64,000 bases of DNA, from the IMG/VR virus record IMGVR_UViG_3300026521_000471, positions 62,001 to 126,000 of that record. One strand, written 5' to 3'. The notes under the pieces are model-generated. The model ran no database searches. It was given only the letters and a program-made list of their open reading frames with translations, and was not told the origin of the DNA. Shown here in pieces: positions 5,399-34,214 of the stretch (the first letter of the stretch is position 1; each line of letters begins with the position of its first letter). The translations under genes were made by a program, and so were the position numbers.

Positions 5399-5727
5399 TG
5401 TTAAGGGAACAAATATTAAAAGATTTTCCTAGTTGGTCTCCAGAAAAACAACTAGCAGAATTCCAAGGTTATAAATCATTAGGTTCTTTTTCACCTTTCA
5501 CAGAAGATGACTATCTAGTTATGGAAGCAGTAATGAATAATCAAAATGTTGCTATTGAATGTGAGAATGGAGTATGTTCTATTAAAGATATAGAAAATGA
5601 AGTAGAAGAATTTGTAGAAATTAACTATAAAGAATTATTAGAATCGATTTTAAAAGAAATTGAAAATAGCAATGATACAAATTTAATAGAAAATATTGAA
5701 AAAATTATAAATGAAAGGTTACATTAA
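5398..5727 (+). CDS. Hypothetical acidic protein
   Basis: ORF track; TAATG coupling to the upstream gene. Confidence 0.65.
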   Translation: MLREQILKDFPSWSPEKQLAEFQGYKSLGSFSPFTEDDYLVMEAVMNNQNVAIECENGVCSIKDIENEVEEFVEINYKELLESILKEIENSNDTNLIENIEKIINERLH

Positions 5728-5745
5728 GTTTTTATTTTGTATAAT
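5724..5745 (+). promoter_or_regulatory. Host-sigma70-type promoter TTAAG-N11-TATAAT (representative copy)
   Basis: Same spacing at about 3781, 6565, 6837, 8058, 15844, 18581, 18944, 34234, 45511, 51358, 54822. Confidence 0.7.
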
Positions 5746-5779
5746 TAAAATGTTAAAAGGTAGTTTTTAATTTAACAAT

Positions 5780-5851
5780 TAACTTGTAGCTATAATGGTA
5801 GAGCGGAGTGTGAAGTTCCTCGCGATATTGGTTCGATTCCAATCAAGTTAA
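5780..5851 (+). pseudogene. Degenerate tRNA-like cloverleaf (anticodon ambiguous, GUG or UGA)
   Basis: Acceptor TAACTTG/CAAGTTA, D arm GCTA..GGTA-GAGC, T arm ATTGG-TTCGATT-CCAAT; irregular anticodon arm, no CCA. Confidence 0.5.
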
Positions 5852-6210
5852 TGGATGATCTCAGGCTATTAATTTATTTTAATAGGAATCGCAAAGAATC
5901 ATCAAATAATTGTTAAATTTAATCTATATATAATAGACAGTAGTTGCAGGAATTGAATTCTCCTAAGACGACTCAATGTGCTAATAATGAAAGGTTAGCA
6001 GTCGCTATATTCTCTGTAAGTGAGATAAGTATGGAAATAAGTTGGTAAAACCAAATGACACCATAAACATTTAAGAAATGTAGTTTGATAATTAGTATGA
6101 AATAACAACCTACGGTTATCAGAGGGTCATCCGACAGATAATTAAGTTTATCTGACCCGTACCTTGGAATAGGTCTAGCGATATTATATATATTTTATAA
6201 ACTATCTTTA

Positions 6211-6375
6211 AATAATTTTACCGAAGCCTCTCGTTAGGTTGGGGTTCGATTCCCTACGAAAAAGTAGCTCTTTTTCATAACTTGGAGGAACCTAAGTGAT
6301 GCCCGAAGTTGAGGTTCGATTCCTCTGTAAGGGTAGCTCCCTTTGTAATACATGGTGGGCTTCGGTAAAATTATT
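6211..6375 (+). ncRNA. Structured RNA: 18-bp terminal stem enclosing two T-loop + GUAGCUC-hairpin units
   Basis: Perfect IR 6211-6228/6358-6375; two units GG-TTCGATT-CC ... stem-GTAGCTC-stem with compensatory stems. Confidence 0.6.
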
Positions 6376-6419
6376 ACAAACAAAAATAAATAAGTATATC
6401 TTATGATCGAGGTGTACTT

Positions 6420-6557
6420 ATGAAACTAGTAATAATTTTTTTACTCCTTTTGCTTTTTACAGGATGTAAAGAACCTACAAAAGAGGAAAAAGCTAAAAAA
6501 CAAGAACAAGCTAAGTTATTATTAATTCTAGATTCAATAGAAAATCAAAAAAATTAA
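6420..6557 (+). CDS. Small lipoprotein (45 aa)
   Basis: Not in ORF track; GAGG RBS; MKLVIIFLLLLLFTG-C lipobox. Confidence 0.65.
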   Translation: MKLVIIFLLLLLFTGCKEPTKEEKAKKQEQAKLLLILDSIENQKN

Positions 6558-6671
6558 TATAATTTTAAGGTTACTTTTTGTATAATATCAATATAAGTTT
6601 TAGTTTCAACTATTTTAAATAGTAGTTAGAAGATTTAGGTTTAAGAAATTAGACCTTCTACTAAGACTTAT

Positions 6672-6818
6672 AAATTAACTTTTTAGTGTTACCAAATAAA
6701 AAAGATATAGCAGCTTAACTGCCTCTACTTTATAAATGTTAGAACACTCCTTTATTTTTTAGAACTCCTTTGTTGGGTTATTTGAGTTACTAATTTGGTA
6801 GCACTAAAAAGTTAATTT
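6672..6818 (+). ncRNA. Long hairpin RNA with two anti-Shine-Dalgarno CUCCUU motifs in the enclosed region
   Basis: 26-bp IR 6672-6697/6793-6818 with one G.U; CTCCTT at 6747 and 6765. Confidence 0.5.
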
Positions 6819-6865
6819 TAAAAAATTAAGTTTATTTTAAGAACTTTTTTTGTATAATTACTTTA

Positions 6866-7790
6866 TCGAAACTGATACCACTAAGAAATCTTTGGATTTT
6901 TTAATGGTGCTAGTCACCCATAGTATGATATGGATAACGGGGATAGTATCCCCCGAAGACGGATTTGACAATTCCGTGCTACTTAATTGTAGTCAATTCA
7001 TACAAGCTGACACTTAGGTAGGTTTGTTGCCTATCGGATACTGAAATGTGTCCTATTAGTGAAGTATTGGAATCTGCAGACTAACAATCTGCGTATGTGA
7101 GAGCCATTCGGTGTAGCATACAGAAGCTAGGGATAGTGAAAGGTTCATCCAACAATACGAATTAAGAATAGTGAACAGTAGAATAGGTGTTTGAGTGTAA
7201 AAACAAAGGCTGCTATTCAATACAATAGTATGAGTCCATAAGGCTTACTGCTAGAAGTATGGTGGAAATCGAAAGATGGAAGCAAAGGGTGTGTTGTATT
7301 CTGAAGGTCATACTTTGGAGCAACTGAGCAGACACACCCTTGTCATTATCGTATAGCTCAGGGTAGAGCGTTTTCATTTTAAGGAAAAGGTCGAAGAGTC
7401 GAATCTTCTACGGAAATATTAAAACGGAAAGTTCTGCTCCCTATGTAAAAGGTCGAAAGACCCGACGAAAATAGCCTAATCGCTGACAGTTTAACTGAAT
7501 TGGCGACAATTAGTACCTCCCAAGGGGAAAGTTGTTTGATAGGATGCAGCATTTATTGGGGTAGCTCCTCATTAACGGCCTGTAAGAAGGACGGAAGAAT
7601 GTTGATAATCGAGTAGTCACATAGTAGAGAGGAAATGCTACCTCTGTAAAAAACAAAGCGGCTATGGGAATCAACTATAATGTACTGGGGACAGTAGTTA
7701 TAGTGGATAAGGAGAGAACCTTTTATGGGGACATAATTGGATAATGCTCTGAATGGATTTCTACTAAAAGGTGTAATCTCAACCTTTTAA
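6866..7790 (+). ncRNA. GOLLD-like giant ornate RNA
   Basis: About 900 nt ORF-free, GC-enriched, hairpin-dense region after promoter 6837-6858; GTGTG..TGTATTCT..AGCAACTGAG..ACAC, CGAGTAGT and 3' GTAATCTCA hairpin resemble GOLLD as I recall it; next to tRNAs, with an embedded tRNA. Ends approximate. Confidence 0.7.
7347..7416 (+). tRNA. Degenerate tRNA-Lys(UUU)-like element embedded in the GOLLD-like RNA
   Basis: TAGCTCAGGGTAGAGC D arm, TTTTC-ATTTTAA-GGAAA anticodon arm, aberrant T loop (GTCGAAT), no CCA. Confidence 0.55.
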
Positions 7791-7937
7791 AATAAAATTT
7801 TAATGAGAAAGAATTATAGATAAAGATTACATCGTAATTTTTGAAACAATTGACAGGAACCCGTTCGATTCGTGGTTTTGGAAGCTGGTGCCACTTTAAG
7901 TCTTTATTGCTTCTATCTTTCTCATTAAAATTTTATT
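7791..7937 (+). ncRNA. Structured RNA closed by a perfect 22-bp stem, apical GTTCGATTC T-loop
   Basis: IR 7791-7812/7916-7937. Confidence 0.5.
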
Positions 7938-8057
7938 TAAATATAGTTTAATACAATTTTTATTAATTGAAAATATCTATTCAATTAAGTTTGAGGTGAA
8001 ATAGAAGATTGAGTGAAAGTCTCATATTTAAATAAAATTTAAATTTTTAAGTGTAAA

Positions 8058-8097
8058 TTAAGAAAAATTATTGTATAATTACAGTAATTAAAAAGAA
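8058..8097 (+). promoter_or_regulatory. Promoter of tRNA array 1
   Basis: TTAAG-N11-TATAAT; 8068-8097 is identical over 30 nt to 18591-18620. Confidence 0.7.
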
Positions 8098-8151
8098 AAA
8101 AATAAAAAGTGATATAAATAAAATCACAAAATAAAAATAAGGAGAACGGTT

Positions 8152-8241
8152 ATGAAAATAGTATCAATATTTAACAATTATTTAAACATATTTTATTCGG
8201 CACTAATATCGTACTCTTCTTATTTTAGAGTCTTTCACTAA
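8152..8241 (+). CDS. Leader peptide A (29 aa, MKIVSIFNNYLNIFYSALISYSSYFRVFH)
   Basis: AAGGAG RBS; Ser x5, Tyr x4, Phe x4, Ile x4 (all ATA), one TTA, matching the downstream tRNAs. Confidence 0.8.
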   Translation: MKIVSIFNNYLNIFYSALISYSSYFRVFH

Positions 8242-8330
8242 GAGATAAATTCATTTTTATCCCTTAGTGAAGAACTTAGGGATAAATTGAAAATCTTTCA
8301 AAAATCCCCTATTTTCTTTACAAATTACTT
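8236..8330 (+). promoter_or_regulatory. Attenuator-like switch A
   Basis: Box 1 CACTAAGAGATAAA (8236-8249) and arm 3 (8275-8286) both pair with arm 2 TTTATCCCTTAGTG (8256-8269); C-rich, G-poor tract follows. Confidence 0.7.
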
Positions 8331-8331
8331 T

Positions 8332-8422
8332 GGAGAGTTGGCAGAGTTGGTCGATTGCACCGGTCTTGAAAACCGGCGACGTGTAACAGCGTCCGAGAGT
8401 TCGAATCTCTCACTCTCCACCA
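8332..8422 (+). tRNA. tRNA-Ser(UGA)
   Basis: Type II cloverleaf, CCGGT-CTTGAAA-ACCGG, encoded CCA. Confidence 0.95.
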
Positions 8423-8426
8423 TTTT

Positions 8427-8511
8427 GGAAGCGTAGTCAAGTGGTCAACGACGGCAGACTGTAAATCTGCTCCCTATGGGTTCGGTGGTTCAAATCCACC
8501 CGCTTCCACCA
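8427..8511 (+). tRNA. tRNA-Tyr(GUA)
   Basis: GCAGA-CTGTAAA-TCTGC, V arm, CCA. Confidence 0.95.
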
Positions 8512-8570
8512 TAGAAAAAAATAAAAAATTAAGTTAATCTAAAGGATTAATTTGGTATAATAACTTTATA

Positions 8571-8743
8571 AATTGATTGAAATATGAAAACTTGAAAACG
8601 GATTAAACTGTGGTGGTTTATGATGTGGCGAAGTTGTAAACAAAAGAGCCCGGACCATTAGTAAAAGACTAACCATCTTTGAAAGTGGTACGGAAGCTGT
8701 TTGGATGAAGACGGGTACTAAAGTTTTCATTTTTCAGTCAATT
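8571..8743 (+). ncRNA. Structured RNA domain closed by a ~23-bp stem, abutting the permuted tRNA
   Basis: IR 8571-8593/8721-8743 with G.U on the + strand; GC-enriched multibranch interior. Confidence 0.5.
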
Positions 8744-8776
8744 GATTGAGAATTAAACTAAGAAAATACATCGAAG

Positions 8777-8869
8777 TAAAACCGCTGACATATTGTCTTG
8801 TTGGTTCGAGTCCAACCTTCCCCACCAGTTTATATGGGTGAAGTGGTGAAATTGGTAAACACGGCGGAT
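8777..8869 (+). tRNA. Circularly permuted tRNA, best reconstructed as Leu(UAA): 3' half 8777-8827, spacer, 5' half 8836-8869
   Basis: 3' half has V arm, T arm and CTTCCCC-A-CCA; the downstream 5' half GGG(T)GAAG-TG-GTG-AAATTGGTAAA-CAC-GGCGGAT complements both acceptor and anticodon stems; flanks 8744-8772 and 8867-8901 pair. Confidence 0.65.
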
Positions 8870-8920
8870 GATAAAATATTTCTTAGGATTCAATCTCAAT
8901 CAGGTCTGAAATAAAAAAGC

Positions 8921-8997
8921 GGACAATTAACTCAGTTGGTTAGAGTCACCGCCTCATAAGCGGGAGGTCGCTGGTTCGAGTCCAGCATTGTCCACCA
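8921..8997 (+). tRNA. tRNA(CAU), probably Ile2 (lysidine type, reads AUA)
   Basis: CTCATAA loop, GTCGCTGGTTCGAGTCCAGCA Ile2-like T arm, CCA; leader A uses ATA four times. Confidence 0.85.
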
Positions 8998-9673
8998 TCA
9001 ATACAAAAGTATCATTCAAAATCATTTTAATTTCACGCTCCTTTAAAACTATTAAATTATTAACAACGTCCCATTTTGCTTTATCTCTTTCTCGTTCATA
9101 TCCTTTAACTTCAATAAATATATTTAAATCGGGAATATAAAAATCTGGAAAATATAAGTGTTTTCTTCCTTTCCATTCATATTCAAATGGTTCTGTATCT
9201 CTAATATAGTTAATATCATGTTCCACTAAATATTTTGCTACTATCACTTCCCATGTTCCATGAAATTTATCTCCATTAAATTCAATTATTTTTACTCTAC
9301 CACAAACGTTATTAGCAGAATAACTATCTGGATTATTACGAACCATATCTCTCATTCGTTCTGATTGTTCAATTTTATACTTAGTACTTTTCATATATGC
9401 TTGAAAATTATCTGACATAAAGCCTTGAGGTTCCCAACCATTAATTTCCATATTATGATGTTTGGTCCAATAATGATTTCTAAATTGACCAATAGTTTTA
9501 AAATGTTTATCGCATTTATTACAAATATACTGATTATTATCTATATTAAGAAATTTATCTGACAACATATCTCTTTGATTTTTTTCACAAGCTTTTGTAC
9601 CTATATGACTTTTTAATTTAGTTAAAGAACTAAACTCTTTTCCACAATCAGAACATATTTTTGAGTCATTCAT
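8954..9673 (-). mobile_element. Free-standing homing endonuclease-like gene (C2H2 zinc fingers + PD-(D/E)XK domain)
   Basis: CSDC..H, CNKC..H..H fingers; YFPDFYIPDLNIFIEVKG nuclease motif; antisense insertion in the tRNA cluster. Confidence 0.7.
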
Positions 9674-9702
9674 TAGTCTTCCCTTTTTTGTATAATTTAA
9701 TT

Positions 9703-9768
9703 AGAAGGACAGCAACTCATACTTCCCGAGTTGTTTCTTAATTGGTGCAAACAATTAAGATTACTTCT
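9703..9768 (+). ncRNA. Conserved three-way-junction RNA antisense to an endonuclease 5' UTR (copy 1)
   Basis: AGAAG-GACAG-[stem]-TT-TCTTAA[stem]TTAAGA-TTA-CTTCT, repeated with covariation at 28593-28655; TGTATAAT just upstream. Confidence 0.6.
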
Positions 9769-10265
9769 TTATTACTCTTATTTATACTTATTTTTAATCA
9801 ATTTTAGAAACTTTCTAATATTTTCAAAGGAATTTAAGTTTATTTTAATATATATTATTGTATAATATTATAAATAAAAAGGTTATTAAAAATTATATTA
9901 GCCCACCATTAAAATAATTGATTGCTTAAAGATTTCTTTGAAATTTTTCAGCAGTTAATAGAAATATTAACTTTAGCAAATGAGCCCAAGTATCACCCGA
10001 AGCTATTAAGTAGGGATTGCCTCTCCATTGGAAGATGGCTTGGGAGCCGATTTAAACCGAAGTACAACTCTGTACAAGGACAGTTTTAAAACTGGTGGTT
10101 ATGTGCTTTATTCCTAAAAGCAATGAGTAAAAATTAAGCGTGAAAAATAAAACTCAAAAATAAGGACAGAAAGATGAATTTTACATTTAGTAAGTCCTAC
10201 TATAAATCAGTCTAATTCAATAGGGTTTGTAGTAGGACGTTAATATAATAACAGAAAACTACAAA

Positions 10266-10341
10266 CCCGTTGAAGCTAACTAAGTAGAAGCGCTGGTCTG
10301 AAAAACCAGAGGAGTTGGAGCGTTACCAACCAGCGGGACCA
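10266..10341 (+). tRNA. Non-canonical tRNA-Phe(GAA)
   Basis: Full cloverleaf and CCA, CTGGT-CTGAAAA-ACCAG; no GG in the D loop, T loop AGCGTTA. Confidence 0.75.
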
Positions 10342-10352
10342 TTTTAATTAAT

Positions 10353-10430
10353 GGGACCGTCGAATATCCGGTGACTGTTCGTTGGACTGAAAATCCAAAG
10401 GTAGAGGTTCGACTCCTCTCGGTCCCACCA
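10353..10430 (+). tRNA. tRNA-Phe(GAA)
   Basis: TTGGA-CTGAAAA-TCCAA, T loop TTCGACT, CCA. Confidence 0.9.
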
Positions 10431-10507
10431 TTTAATTTCTTCATTATTACTATAAATATAAAAATCACTCCGATAATCTATAAATAAAAATAAAAAAGAG
10501 ATTAATT

Positions 10508-13025: not shown

Positions 13026-15212
13026 ATGAAATGGAATATTAATAAAAAATTAAAAGCCATGACAATCATTCCGAGTATAATAATGATATTTGGATTTGGT
13101 TATCTGGTTTATACCGATTATAATGAATATCGAGATTTAGTTGTTTTAGAAAAAACAGTTAAAATCGATACACATATTAATCATTTAGTGCATTTCTTGC
13201 AACAAGAAAGAGGAGCTAGTGCTGGATACGTAGCATCCAATGGTAAAAAATTTAAAAATCAACTATCTGAAATTCGTAAAAAAACTGATACAAAATTCAC
13301 TATCTTAGAGAAAGCATTAAAAGGTAACAGAAATCATTTTACATTAGAAATGTCTAGAAAAATAGATGAGGCACTTCAAATGTATAACGAACTTTCCGTT
13401 ATGCGAAGTAGTATTGATAATTTAACAATAACCGTTCCAGAAACTGTTAAATACTTTAGTTCCATGAATGCAACCTTTTTAGATTTTATTAAACTAAGTA
13501 AAGATTTATCTAATGATAATGAATTTTCAAAACAACTTTCAGTAATTACAGCTATTAGTGCTACAAAAGAATTAGCAGGTAAAGAAAGAGCTGTTATGAC
13601 AAGTGTTTTTGCTAAAGATAAATTTATAGATGGTTTCTATGCACAATTTAAAACTTTAGTAGCATTACAGAAAAGTTATATGGAAAGTTTTAGATTACTT
13701 GCAACTCCAACAGCAATTAAAATTCTTAATGAAATATCTTCTACTTCTCCTTTTTTAGACGTTGAAGAAATGCGAAAGATTGCAATGGAACGAAATAAAG
13801 ATGGGGCTTTTGGTGTTGACTCGGTAAGATGGTTTGATACTATGACTAAAAAAATAAATGGTATGGAACAAATCGAACATAAATTAGAAAATATTCTTCT
13901 AGATGAAATTGATAGTCAAATGAAATATTTATTGTCGATGGTTATTACAATGTTTATCCTTGCAGTCTTAATTACATCTAGTTTAACTTATGCAGGGTAT
14001 AAATTTAATAAATTTTTAATCGATAGAGTGAACAAGATGAATATTATTTTAGAAGATTCTATTAATACTCATAGCTATGATGAACAATTATTAATTTCTA
14101 ATGATGATGAATTATCAAAGATAGAAAATGCAATTAATAAAATGTTTGTGAGTTTAACTGAAGCTGCAGAGGCTAGAAGAATTTCGGATATTGAAATAAA
14201 GAAAAAAGCTGAAGAAACTGCAAAACTATTAGCAAGAAATAATATGAATCTTAAACTGAATAAACTAATGAGTACGCATACAACCGATAACCTAAATGAT
14301 ATTAAAGATGGGCTGAGTGATGGGACTGAAGAATTAGAAAAAATTAATGAAATTAATGATAAAGCCCAAGATAATTTTAATTCTGTTATTGCGGCTAAAA
14401 ATACTATGGTTACTACTTTAGAAACCGTTTCTGAAGGAATGAATTCTACAACAGAAAGAGCGGAACAATTAGAAGAATCTGTTAATGAAATTGCAAGCAT
14501 TATTGGTTTAATCAAAGATATTTCTGAACAAACAAACTTACTTGCACTTAATGCAGCTATTGAAGCAGCAAGAGCGGGTGAGCATGGACGAGGTTTTGCC
14601 GTGGTTGCTGATGAAGTTCGTAAACTAGCTGAGAGAACAGCTGTTGCAACTAAGAATGTAGAAGCGAGTATTAATATCGTTAAACAAAATACTTCTGAAA
14701 TGAATGAAAGTACTGAACAAATGACAGAAAGTATTAAAGATGCTCAAGAGGTATCTCATACTCTAGATGTAGAATTAGACACCTTAATATCTATCAATAG
14801 AAATAATACTGTTAGAAATAATATGATTAGTGAAGATATTCTTGTTACCCTTACTAAATTAGAACATGTTATTTTTAAAATAATGGGTTATAATAGCGTT
14901 TTAGAAGAATGTACAAAATGTGAACCTGTCACTCATGAAGCTTGTAGATTTGGACAATGGTATAAAACTGAGGGAAAAAATAGATATAGTAAAAATTCAT
15001 CTTTTAGAAGTATCGAAATACCGCATAAAGAAGTCCACGAAAATGTTAGAAAAGCCGTTGAATTAATAGGCAAAAAAGATGATGATACTATTATTCGATA
15101 CTTTGAGATCGTAGAAGTAAATTCTAAAAAATTATTTGATCTTTTGACAAGAATAGTTAAAGAAGAAAATGATAAAATGGTTCTGGAGATTAATGATGGA
15201 AAAAATAAATAA
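13026..15212 (+). CDS. Methyl-accepting chemotaxis protein with NIT sensor and C-terminal CZB domain
   Basis: [17 protein letters not shown] (NIT)-TM-HAMP; [35 protein letters not shown] signalling tip; [16 protein letters not shown]. Confidence 0.9.
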
Positions 15213-18733: not shown

Positions 18734-18841
18734 ATGAAAACTATTACACTACAAAATAAAAATATTACTACTATTCATAATGCCAATAAACCGGCGGTCC
18801 TTGAAATTATTAAACAAGAACAGGATAAACAGATTCTGTAA
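18734..18841 (+). CDS. Leader peptide B (35 aa, MKTITLQNKNITTIHNANKPAVLEIIKQEQDKQIL)
   Basis: AAGGAG RBS; 33 of 34 non-Met residues are amino acids served by array-2 tRNAs; Ile only ATT, Leu only CTN. Confidence 0.8.
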   Translation: MKTITLQNKNITTIHNANKPAVLEIIKQEQDKQIL

Positions 18842-18935
18842 GAGATAATTAATCTTATCTTTTACAGAATTGGTTTTCTGTGAGAGATAAGATATTCTAA
18901 ATATCTATTCTCCCACAAAACCTTTTCAATTTTTA
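18834..18935 (+). promoter_or_regulatory. Attenuator-like switch B
   Basis: Box 1 (18834-18848) and arm 3 (18876-18893) both complement arm 2 (18852-18869); C-rich tract follows. Confidence 0.75.
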
Positions 18936-19304: not shown

Positions 19305-19380
19305 GGGTGTATAGCTCAGTTGGTAGAGCACATCACTTTTAATGATGGGGTCTAGGGTTCAAATCCCTATGCACCCACCA
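19305..19380 (+). tRNA. tRNA-Lys(UUU) copy 2
   Basis: CATCA-CTTTTAA-TGATG, CCA. Confidence 0.93.
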
Positions 19381-19464
19381 ATGTAGCATTTTACTAAGAA
19401 GATTAGATTCTTTTTATTAAAGTGTTATTGTTAGGACGCTAACATAACTCTTAGGAGTATTTTT

Positions 19465-19539
19465 ATAGTAGTAATAACCTTTGTCGGTTTCTCCTTACTA
19501 AGGAAATGAGTTCGAGTCTCATTAAAGGCTTACTACTAT
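19465..19539 (+). ncRNA. D-armless tRNA-like element in a long closing stem
   Basis: ATAGTAGTAA/TTACTACTAT stem, CCTTT/AAAGG, anticodon-like hairpin and T arm TGAG-TTCGAGT-CTCA. Confidence 0.45.
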
Positions 19540-19599
19540 ATCAAAAAGTAATAGCGTGGAGTAATTAACCACAAAATTATATACTCCGATTTTAAATAT

Positions 19600-19675
19600 T
19601 GCGGAGTGGAGCAGTTGGTAGCTCGCTGGGCTCATAACCCGGAGGTCATTGGTTCAAGTCCAATCTCCGCCACCA
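19600..19675 (+). tRNA. Initiator tRNA-fMet(CAU)
   Basis: 1:72 mismatch (U.C), three G-C pairs closing the anticodon loop, CCA. Confidence 0.93.
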
Positions 19676-19719: not shown

Positions 19720-20008
19720 ATATATACATTTTTAAGAGAATTAAAGATGGAAATTACATCGAATTATTGGAAATTAGGAAACAACTTTCCATTGATTTTA
19801 TCTCTTACAACCGAGAAAAAGCCATAAATTGAGTGGTGTTGTAAAACTAAGAGTTGTCTAAGTTACCTGAAAGAATGGTTATTAAATAGATGCACCCAGT
19901 AAGAAAGTGCCGGGCATCAACTAAACTTAATATTATTAATTTAATATGAATGACAAACGGGCGGAGTATGGTATAAACAGGGCAGCTCAAAATTTATAAA
20001 TGTATATG
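19720..20008 (+). ncRNA. Unidentified structured RNA between fMet and Ala tRNAs
   Basis: Late promoter 19708; terminal stem 19722-19731/19998-20007; several internal hairpins; no convincing ORF. Confidence 0.4.
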
Positions 20009-20013
20009 AAAAT

Positions 20014-20171: not shown

Positions 20172-20330
20172 ATGAGAACAATTAATACAATTACAACTAC
20201 TGTAAATACACTTATTAATAACACTATTGATACTCATGCAAATGATATTATTAATATTCATACTAATGAACAAATTCTGGATATTCAGCCGAATATTCAA
20301 GAAGATGAGCAGGAACCAATCTTTCTGTAA
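20172..20330 (+). CDS. Leader peptide C (52 aa, MRTINTITTTVNTLINNTIDTHANDIINIHTNEQILDIQPNIQEDEQEPIFL)
   Basis: AAGGA RBS; 47 of 51 non-Met codons are Ile/Thr/Asn/Asp/Gln/Glu/Leu(CTN)/His/Pro, the downstream tRNA set; no Lys, ATA or TTA. Confidence 0.85.
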   Translation: MRTINTITTTVNTLINNTIDTHANDIINIHTNEQILDIQPNIQEDEQEPIFL

Positions 20331-20430
20331 GAGATAACTTAAACTTTATCCCTTACAGAGAGATTTGTAGGGGATAAAAGAAACAAACTTTCCACTTTCT
20401 TTTCTCAATCCTTTACAAACTCTCTAAATT
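20324..20430 (+). promoter_or_regulatory. Attenuator-like switch C
   Basis: Box 1 (20324-20337) and arm 3 (20364-20377) both complement arm 2 (20345-20359); long G-free C/T-rich tract follows. Confidence 0.75.
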
Positions 20431-20435
20431 ATTAT

Positions 20436-20519
20436 TGTGATATGCGCCGAATGGTAAGGTAGCCGACTGTTAATCGGTCGAGAGAAATCTCATTGCTGGT
20501 TCGAATCCAGCTATCACAG
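20436..20519 (+). tRNA. tRNA-Asn(GUU) with an unusual long variable arm
   Basis: GCCGA-CTGTTAA-TCGGT, V hairpin GAGA-GAAA-TCTC, G73; followed by CC then the next tRNA. Confidence 0.85.
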
Positions 20520-20521
20520 CC

Positions 20522-20598
20522 CGTCCCTTAGCTCAGTTGGTTAGAGCGTTCCGCTGATAACGGAGAGGTCGGAAGTTCAAATCTTCCAGGGACGACCA
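20522..20598 (+). tRNA. tRNA-Ile(GAU)
   Basis: TTCCG-CTGATAA-CGGAG, CCA. Confidence 0.95.
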
Positions 20599-21062: not shown

Positions 21063-21132
21063 TTATATCAATTTATTGATGAAGCCTTAATTTAAATATT
21101 AAAGTTTCACAAATAAATTGTTACGAGCTTTA

Positions 21133-21232
21133 GAATCGCACATAGGATACGCGGCCTATGTAGCAGAAGTACCCACTTTAAGGAGGGAGATAGATTTCAA
21201 GGGATTGAAATTGAATATCCAGAATGCGATTC
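21133..21232 (+). ncRNA. Unidentified multibranch RNA inside tRNA array 2
   Basis: Closing stem GAATCGCA/TGCGATTC with three internal hairpins. Confidence 0.45.
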
Positions 21233-21242
21233 ATTAAAAAAT

Positions 21243-32363: not shown

Positions 32364-34214
32364 ATGAGAACAAACTATAATTTAGAAATTAGAAAAAATT
32401 ATATAGATAAGGAAGTTACGGTTTCGGGGTGGGTTAATTCAATCCGTGACCATGGTGGCGTTTACTTTATTGATTTAAGAGATACTTCCGGTATTGTACA
32501 AATTGTTGCAAATCCAACTTCTTTAACAGAAGATGAATATGAAAAGTATCACGCTTTAAGAGATGAGTGGGTAATTGAAGTTACTGGTAAAGTTAGACTT
32601 CGTGGAGAAGGTCTTGAAAATCCAAAATTATTAACTGGTGAAATTGAAATTGTTGCAGAAGATTTAAAAATTCTAAGTAAAGCAAAAACATTACCGTTCC
32701 AACCTGGAGACGAATCTGTTAATGATGATTTAAAGCTTAAATACAGATATTTGGATATGAGAGATAACAAACTGCAGGATACTCTTACTAAAAGAAGTGA
32801 TATGGCGTTTAATATCAGAGTTGCTCTGCATAACGAATTAGATTATGCGGAAATCGAAACTCCAATCTTAATGAAGTCATCTGAAGGTGGAGCAGAAGAA
32901 GTATATGCCACTTCTAAACTATTTCCTGGAGAATTCTATTCACTGCCACAATCACCACAATTATATAAACAGTTACTTATGATTGGTGGGAGAGAAAAGT
33001 ATTATTCATTTGCAAAATGCTTTAGAGCTGAAAGTGCTCGTAAAGATAGAAACATCGAATTCACACAAATAGATATGGAACGATCTTTTTCAGATAGAAA
33101 TGGTATTTTAAAAGATGTTACTAAAGTTTTAACTGCAGCTTTTGAAACAACCAATGTCGATTTTGATAAAATTAATAATGATGTTAGAGAAACAGTCCGG
33201 TGGCTTGATAGTATTAGTATTGAAGGTGAAATTGATTCTTCAGCTGATATTTTAATTCCTATGATCAAATACAATGACGCATTAAACTACTTCGGTAGTG
33301 ATAAGCCGGATTTACGTTTCAAAATGTCATTGATTGAAGCTAAGAAACTTTTTATTAATACTGATTTTACGGTTTTTAAAGATATTGCTAAAAAGGATAA
33401 TACAGTTGTTAAAGCTTTAGTGGCTAAAAATGCAGACTATCCAGACAAACTATCTAAAAAGAAAATTAAAGATTTAGAAAAATTTGTTAGTGAATTTGGA
33501 GCTAAAGGTTTAGCTTATTTTCAAATGAAAGAAGAAGGCCTAAAAGGTCCTTTAACTAAATTTCTAAAACAAGTGGATTTAGATTTAATCCAAATTGAAT
33601 GTGAATTAGAAGTAGGTGATATTGTTTTCTTTGGAGCAGGTGATAAAGATACCGTTTTAGATTACATGGGTCGACTAAGAATTAAAATAGCAGAAGAGTT
33701 AAATTTAATTAATGATAAATTCATACCATTATTTGTTACTGATTTTCCTATGTTTGAAAAAGGTAAAGACGGCACAATTAAAGCTATGCACCATCCATTT
33801 ACAGCACCTATAATGGAATCTTATACAAATTATTTAAATGATGAATGTGACCTTACAGAAATTCTTACTGATAGTTATGATCTTGTTTTAAATGGTGTGG
33901 AATTAGGTGGTGGTTCAGTAAGAATTTATGATGAAGAGTTACAAGAAAATATATTTAAGATTATGGGGCTTACTGATGAGGAAATAAAAGAAAAATTTGG
34001 TTTCTTTACAGAGGCTTTACAGTATGGTACTCCGCCACATTGTGGATTTGCTTTTGGTTTTGATAGATTAGTTTCACTATTATTAAAAAAAGAAACTATT
34101 AGAGAAGTAATAGCATTTCCTAAAAATCAAAGTGGTCTATGTCCTATGTCTGAATCACCAAATAAACCGGATGTTAATCAATTAAAAGAATTAGGTTTAA
34201 GAATAAAATCTTAA
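32364..34214 (+). CDS. aspS: Aspartyl-tRNA synthetase, bacterial type, probably non-discriminating (Asp/Asn)
   Basis: RDHGG..FIDLRD OB fold, LPQSPQLYKQLLM, CFRAE, EFTQIDME, GAD insert, PPHCGFAFGFDRL. Confidence 0.97.
   Translation: MRTNYNLEIRKNYIDKEVTVSGWVNSIRDHGGVYFIDLRDTSGIVQIVANPTSLTEDEYEKYHALRDEWVIEVTGKVRLRGEGLENPKLLTGEIEIVAEDLKILSKAKTLPFQPGDESVNDDLKLKYRYLDMRDNKLQDTLTKRSDMAFNIRVALHNELDYAEIETPILMKSSEGGAEEVYATSKLFPGEFYSLPQSPQLYKQLLMIGGREKYYSFAKCFRAESARKDRNIEFTQIDMERSFSDRNGILKDVTKVLTAAFETTNVDFDKINNDVRETVRWLDSISIEGEIDSSADILIPMIKYNDALNYFGSDKPDLRFKMSLIEAKKLFINTDFTVFKDIAKKDNTVVKALVAKNADYPDKLSKKKIKDLEKFVSEFGAKGLAYFQMKEEGLKGPLTKFLKQVDLDLIQIECELEVGDIVFFGAGDKDTVLDYMGRLRIKIAEELNLINDKFIPLFVTDFPMFEKGKDGTIKAMHHPFTAPIMESYTNYLNDECDLTEILTDSYDLVLNGVELGGGSVRIYDEELQENIFKIMGLTDEEIKEKFGFFTEALQYGTPPHCGFAFGFDRLVSLLLKKETIREVIAFPKNQSGLCPMSESPNKPDVNQLKELGLRIKS

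Follow-up and report, generated by a model that had tools for sequence, protein, structure and literature searches.

Introduction

Transcription attenuators of amino-acid operons (trpL, hisL, thrL, leuL, ilvL, and pheL) combine a promoter-proximal short ORF, preceded by a Shine-Dalgarno site and enriched in the codons whose decoding is to be sensed, with overlapping RNA helices 1:2, 2:3, and 3:4, the last of which is followed by U residues (PMC1183508). Multivalent sensing is known in this group, as in thrL (Thr, Ile) and ilvL (Ile, Leu, Val). Control is probably not confined to biosynthetic operons, since the pheM leader of the Escherichia coli pheST attenuator appears to use Phe codons to control a gene of the translation apparatus, although it would act on the synthetase rather than on tRNA genes and would sense a single amino acid. 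In the uORF-controlled, Rho-dependent attenuators mgtL-mgtA and corL-corA, completing translation of a short ORF switches the leader fold and exposes a C-rich stretch, whereas stalling hides it; these systems sense Mg2+ or proline and control transporters (PMC12360218). T-box riboswitches likewise sense the state of a specific tRNA and control genes of the same amino-acid and tRNA pathway by an antiterminator-terminator switch, but they bind uncharged tRNA directly, need no ORF, and control synthetase or amino-acid genes. In contrast, how phages regulate the tRNAs they carry is largely unknown, and these genes are usually treated as constitutive passengers.

Here, a 64,000-nucleotide stretch of DNA (the window), corresponding to positions 62001-126000 of a 224,467-bp IMG/VR contig, was analyzed to determine whether short ORFs preceding its tRNA arrays resemble such leaders. 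The window is about 27% G+C and encodes an aspartyl-tRNA synthetase (32364-34214) and a methyl-accepting chemotaxis protein with NIT and CZB domains (13026-15212), indicating that it comes from a huge phage. An earlier note, made from the sequence alone, had claimed that a leader at this locus (leader A) encodes the tRNA content of the first array, that its exclusive use of ATA suggests that a CAU tRNA in the array is the lysidine Ile2 species, and that two RNA segments compete for a third. All three claims hold as far as sequence can show, although a fourth segment and the U-rich tract that follows it had been missed.

Architecture of leader A and array 1

Leader A is encoded by ORF 8152-8241 (+), which comprises 29 codons plus TAA and contains 5 Ser codons (all TCN), 4 Tyr, 4 Phe, 4 Ile (all ATA), one TTA, and one CTA. 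A Shine-Dalgarno site (AAGGAG) lies at 8139-8144, 7 nt before the ATG. About 70 nt upstream of the ATG, at 8071-8079 (+), is the TG-extended -10 promoter element TTGTATAAT, a motif that occurs 21 times in the window against 3.75 expected, with 20 copies on the + strand.

The tRNA genes downstream of leader A, all on the + strand, were identified with ARAGORN and Rfam. They include tRNA-Ser(UGA) at 8332-8422, tRNA-Tyr(GUA) at 8427-8511, a CAU tRNA at 8921-8997, an atypical, weakly scoring tRNA-Phe(GAA) at 10266-10341 (Rfam 44.7 bits), and a second tRNA-Phe(GAA) at 10353-10430. In addition, a permuted tRNA-Leu(UAA) gene occupies 8777-8869, with its 3′ half (8777-8827) upstream of its 5′ half (8836-8869) and an 8-nt linker between them. 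The joined halves give an 84-nt class II cloverleaf that is called tRNA-Leu(taa) by ARAGORN. This gene is conserved in L175, a 221.5-kb contig at about 90-95% identity, and is preceded by a promoter-like element at about 8553 and about 210 nt of conserved, apparently structured RNA (8553-8776). The promoter-like element at about 8553 and a second one at 9858 lie inside the array, such that leader A may control only part of it. The second of these, a TTGTATAAT promoter, is carried by a 915-bp insertion (8984-9898) that is absent from L175, carries a reverse-strand zinc-finger endonuclease-like ORF (8954-9673), and now separates the CAU tRNA from the Phe genes. The adjacent CAU tRNA differs from that of L175 by many compensatory changes, as if it had been replaced together with the insertion.

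The CAU tRNA at 8921-8997 is Ile2-like. In 13 of the 14 E. coli records sampled down the ranking of 5,444, its best match is the annotated tRNA-Ile with anticodon CAU, at 79-82% identity with an identical T arm, and C4-G69, U12-A23, C29-G41, and A73, which are probably identity elements of this species, are present. Thus, the Ile2 assignment has support that is independent of the leader. In contrast, the other CAU tRNA of the window (19600-19675, +) has a 1:72 mismatch and three G-C pairs in the anticodon stem, like an initiator.

The TAA stop (8239-8241) lies inside segment 1 (box 1; 8228-8249, core 8236-8249), which covers the last four codons and the stop. Box 1 and arm 3 (segment 3; 8275-8286) are both complementary to arm 2 (8256-8269, within segment 2 at 8256-8276), and the two alternative hairpins are near-isoenergetic, at -16.6 kcal/mol for 1:2 and -16.4 kcal/mol for 2:3. 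With 1:2 formed, positions 8278-8283 of segment 3 pair with a fourth segment (8304-8309), closing hairpin 3:4 (8278-8309), which is followed directly by a U-rich run at 8310-8321. The anatomy is therefore the four-segment one of classical attenuators. A simple terminator scan did not flag hairpin 3:4 because its loop is too long. Hairpin 2:3 was rejected as an intrinsic terminator because it is followed by A-rich rather than U-rich sequence.

Recurrence of the leader in the window and in related contigs

Of the 28 codons considered in leader A, 18 are cognate to the tRNAs of array 1, against 23% in the genes of the window (binomial 4.7e-6). However, among 240 short ATG ORFs in the window, leader A ranks first only narrowly (0.64 against 0.636), because spurious ORFs in AT-rich DNA are also rich in Phe, Tyr, and Ile, and its composition alone is therefore weak evidence. 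The same design, with the same segments, occurs twice more in the window, and the exact 10-mer that holds the stop is found on the + strand only at these three leaders. Leader B (18734-18934, +) consists of ORF 18734-18841, the same four segments, and a U-tract at 18923-18934; it adds Lys and Ala codons and precedes Lys, Lys, initiator-like Met, and Ala tRNAs, followed by array 2b. Leader C (20172-20425, +), with ORF 20172-20330, precedes 13 tRNAs of nine amino acids: Asn, Ile(GAU), Asp, Gln, Glu, Leu(CUN), Pro, Thr, and His. Cognate codons account for 33/34 in leader B (against the whole of array 2) and 47 of 51 in leader C, and leaders C and B are the two top-ranked short ORFs for their codon set. 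A table of the three leaders against three codon sets gives a chi-square p = 1.8e-15.

Searches for relatives in INPHARED phages returned only tRNA and endonuclease fragments, scans of IMG/VR with two motif patterns and three neighboring proteins returned only the source contig itself or unrelated phages without tRNA arrays, and GTDB genomes gave two chance hits. The contig carrying a homolog of the 96-aa protein downstream of the array has no tRNAs. Relatives came from three other routes, among them a profile search with the leader peptides and look-ups of homologs of the neighboring 433-aa protein. Together these gave about 20 leaders on independent metagenome contigs, including L175 and the more distant L202, L205, L207, L181, and L185. 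In nine leaders from contigs L072, L099, L131, L141, and L175, the Shine-Dalgarno site, the reading frame, and the position of the stop inside box 1 are kept. The frame and the stop position are also kept in the leaders found later, despite indels and a peptide identity between lineages of 14-69%. The promoter element is conserved in L175, and a similar motif lies upstream of the L202 leader. This recurrence of the design and of the codon bias puts the feature well beyond chance.

Codon content of the leaders and their arrays

Codon choice in the leaders follows the downstream anticodons. Five A-type leaders use ATA for all 15 Ile codons and TCN for all 36 Ser codons, B-type leaders use ATT for 26 of 26 Ile codons and CTN for 11 of 11 Leu codons, and C-type leaders use ATT or ATC for 48 of 51 Ile codons and have no Lys in 259 codons. 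For comparison, in the genes of the window ATA is 34% of Ile codons, TTA or TTG 67% of Leu codons, and Lys 9.9% of all codons. The match is nevertheless imperfect: 10 of 28 codons in leader A are not cognate, the A-type leader of L205, whose array is cut by the contig end, is only 48% cognate, and the C-type leader of L185 (L185:3558-3710, equal to L131:3564-3716) uses ATA 3 times and TTA 6 times although only Glu, Gln, Pro, and His tRNAs are visible downstream, which is either an exception to the codon match or a sign of a recently reshuffled array. Base composition was rejected as the cause of the bias, since AAA, TTA, ATA, and TAT are the commonest G-free codons yet, this exception aside, are absent from C-type leaders. 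Where homologous leaders differ, the replacement codons stay in the cognate set (C-type 93/113 against 42% expected, B-type 55/58 against 55% expected), while the amino-acid changes are chemically arbitrary. Selection therefore acts on codon identity, not on the peptide.

The decisive test for leader A was provided by L202, in which the neighboring protein is 54% identical. Its array consists of Ser(UGA), Tyr(GUA), Asp(GUC), Val(UAC), Phe, Phe, and a CAU tRNA with the C1-A72 mismatch of initiators (L202:17943-18020), and thus holds Asp and Val tRNAs in place of Ile2 and Leu(UAA). The L202 leader has the same box 1, arm 2, and arm 3, and contains 10 Ser, 5 Tyr, 4 Phe, 5 Asp, and 6 Val codons, with no Ile and no TTA. 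It is 30/34 cognate to its own array but only 19/34 to that of the window, and Asp is 5/34 there against 0/92 in the other A-type leaders (p = 0.0011). In L175, the one non-cognate Leu codon of the window's leader, CTA, is ATA.

Conservation of the alternative hairpins

Helix 1:2 is 97.5% paired over 16 leaders, against 43-52% when the partner is slid; six pairs change on both sides, and none of 500 shuffles reaches the observed covariation score. Helices 1:2 and 2:3 are near-isoenergetic in A, B, and C. Within C-type leaders, 2:3 (95.8% paired) and 3:4 (91.5% paired) are kept, but with little variation, whereas between A, B, and C segments 3 and 4 differ in sequence but keep their pairing. 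Segment 4 is present, with sequence changes, in all four A-type lineages (window, L202, L205, and L207), and in each of them hairpin 3:4 is followed by a U-run. A U4 or U5 run is found at this position in three of six B-type leaders (window, L141, and L185), the B-type leader of L175 coming with its 2:3 fold and those of L181 and L188 not having been folded. In contrast, C-type leaders have no clear U-tract.

Proposed mechanism

These results suggest that leader A is a ribosome-mediated (leader-peptide) transcription attenuator that gates transcription from the promoter at 8071 into a tRNA array, and that leaders B and C do the same job for array 2. This reading is considered likely, although regulation is inferred from sequence in the absence of expression, 3′-end, or ribosome-profiling data. 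Because the ORF is written mainly in the codons that the downstream tRNAs read, ribosome transit time would report how well those codons are being decoded. A ribosome at or near the stop masks segment 1 and leaves segment 2 free to pair with segment 3, whereas if the ribosome is absent or lagging, helix 1:2 forms and segment 3 pairs with segment 4 into a hairpin that, with its U-tract, looks like an intrinsic terminator. Compared with the attenuators of amino-acid operons, the regulated genes would be tRNAs rather than biosynthetic enzymes, five to nine amino-acid species would be sensed with synonymous-codon resolution, cognate codons fill the whole ORF, and the element is in a phage and present in several copies per genome. 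In addition, the stop is located in the 5′ part of segment 1, with arm 2 starting 17 nt after it, and not between segments 1 and 2 as in trpL, such that a terminating ribosome cannot mask segment 2. The position of the stop relative to the first helix is closer to the mgtL-mgtA and corL-corA class, although Rho involvement here is only an inference from composition. No T-box, group I intron, or other cis-regulator was found by Rfam in 5700-10500.

The direction of the proposed control is not settled. The homeostatic direction, in which slow decoding gives more tRNA, is favored, although only about as likely as not, because every known codon-biased leader works that way and supply would then follow demand. 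Read literally, however, the position of the stop implies that timely translation favors helix 2:3 and read-through, and a lagging ribosome favors 1:2 plus the terminator-like 3:4 hairpin. Under this opposite, licensing arrangement, tRNA genes would be transcribed only while their codons, that is their amino acids and charging, are well served, a codon-specific counterpart of stringent control. It is supported by the position of the stop in every leader, by the U-runs after 3:4 in A-type lineages and three B-type leaders with nothing terminator-like following 2:3, and by the spread of cognate codons over the whole ORF rather than next to segment 1, which fits a cumulative-delay race. It remains a tentative alternative, since no known codon-biased leader works in this direction, supply would fall when demand rises, C-type leaders lack a U-tract, and the outcome depends on kinetics of ribosome release and polymerase pausing. 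The homeostatic direction could still be reached if ribosome release is fast relative to polymerase progress, so that moderate lag opens helix 1:2 at the right moment. A model in which only the last codons are sensed, as in trpL, was rejected, since the codons at positions -9 to -3 are fixed by helix 1:2 and are partly non-cognate (Val and His in A, Phe in C), and it would not explain the purity of the whole ORF.

Homeostatic control could alternatively act through Rho, as in mgtL-mgtA (PMC12360218), where uORF translation restructures the leader and unmasks a rut site, as it does in corA. In this case, full translation would give helix 2:3 and leave segment 4 and its surroundings as 44-63 nt of unstructured, C-rich, G-poor RNA on which Rho can load, whereas a stalled ribosome would leave segment 1 free, so that 1:2 and 3:4 form and hide that stretch. 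With arm 3 sequestered, the stretch up to the next feature is indeed unstructured in A and B but keeps a short hairpin in C, its C-minus-G excess is in the top 0.6-0.9% of window 55-mers for all three leaders, and the model works for C-type leaders without a U-tract. This version is doubtful, however, because segment 4 must be pyrimidine-rich anyway to pair with the purine-rich segment 3, the stretch is short for a rut site, the conserved U-tracts in A- and B-type leaders are left unexplained, and the host and its Rho are unknown. It is very unlikely that the ORFs instead encode functional small peptides or are chance ORFs, with hairpins that are ordinary terminators, processing sites, or protein-binding repeats unrelated to translation. 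In favor of this view, leader A is hydrophobic and aromatic, like a membrane peptide, its composition alone is not exceptional for AT-rich DNA, and B-type hairpin 1:2 was flagged by the terminator scan. In contrast, the poorly conserved peptides with chemically unrelated replacements that stay in the cognate codon set, the fixed position of the stop, and the change of leader content with array content argue against this view, and peptide function cannot explain the synonymous choices (ATA against ATT, CTN against TTA, TCN against AGY).

A broader possibility, judged slightly more likely than not, is that phage tRNA arrays are under codon-by-codon feedback, each gated by a translated leader that spells out the anticodon set behind it and is rewritten when tRNAs are gained or lost. 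This would be the first leader-peptide attenuator shown to control tRNA genes and the most multivalent one known (up to nine amino acids), and it could be a direct sensor of tRNA depletion, for example by host anticodon nucleases. No published precedent for leader-peptide control of tRNA arrays was found in six literature searches, although attenuator-like leaders, possibly with a Phe-codon mini-ORF, may have been described in the 1980s upstream of the E. coli tRNA-Phe genes pheU and pheV. A leader that reads out the decoding of the codons served by the array would extend attenuation from amino-acid operons to stable-RNA genes and give the phage a supply-and-demand or licensing control over translation capacity. 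It also offers a natural sensor with synonymous-codon resolution, a sequence-only way to assign ambiguous tRNAs (here, CAU as Ile2), and a way to delimit tRNA transcription units in uncultured phages.

Other features of the tRNA regions

A conserved mini-ORF of 13-15 codons rich in Phe, Ser, and Tyr lies just before the two Phe tRNAs in the window (10175-10216, +), in L175, and in L202 (L202:17443). It is followed by two overlapping hairpins with a different sequence from box 1, and it may be a fourth, smaller attenuator. Just upstream of leader A, 7284-7785 (+) is a full-length match to GOLLD RNA (RF02032) at 110.7 bits, below the gathering score of 150 (E = 2.3e-29), in which the weak tRNA at 7347-7416 is embedded. 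The tRNA with the Asn anticodon GUU at 20435-20522 (+) is 84-88 nt long, with a long variable arm (class II shape) and no encoded CCA, which is unusual for Asn. G+C-richer, gene-free stretches between the tRNAs (5850-7280, 9899-10170, 19380-19560, 19830-20010, and 21063-21240) have no strong Rfam match, with only a weak RAGATH-33 hit at 5962-6062; 6234-6345 holds two T-arm-like motifs, and 9990-10050 is conserved in L202 (17350-17410). These are probably further small RNAs or split tRNAs. Permuted (two-piece) tmRNA genes were also observed on four unrelated viral contigs (L041, L042, L044, and L045) that share the cytidylyltransferase-cupin protein.
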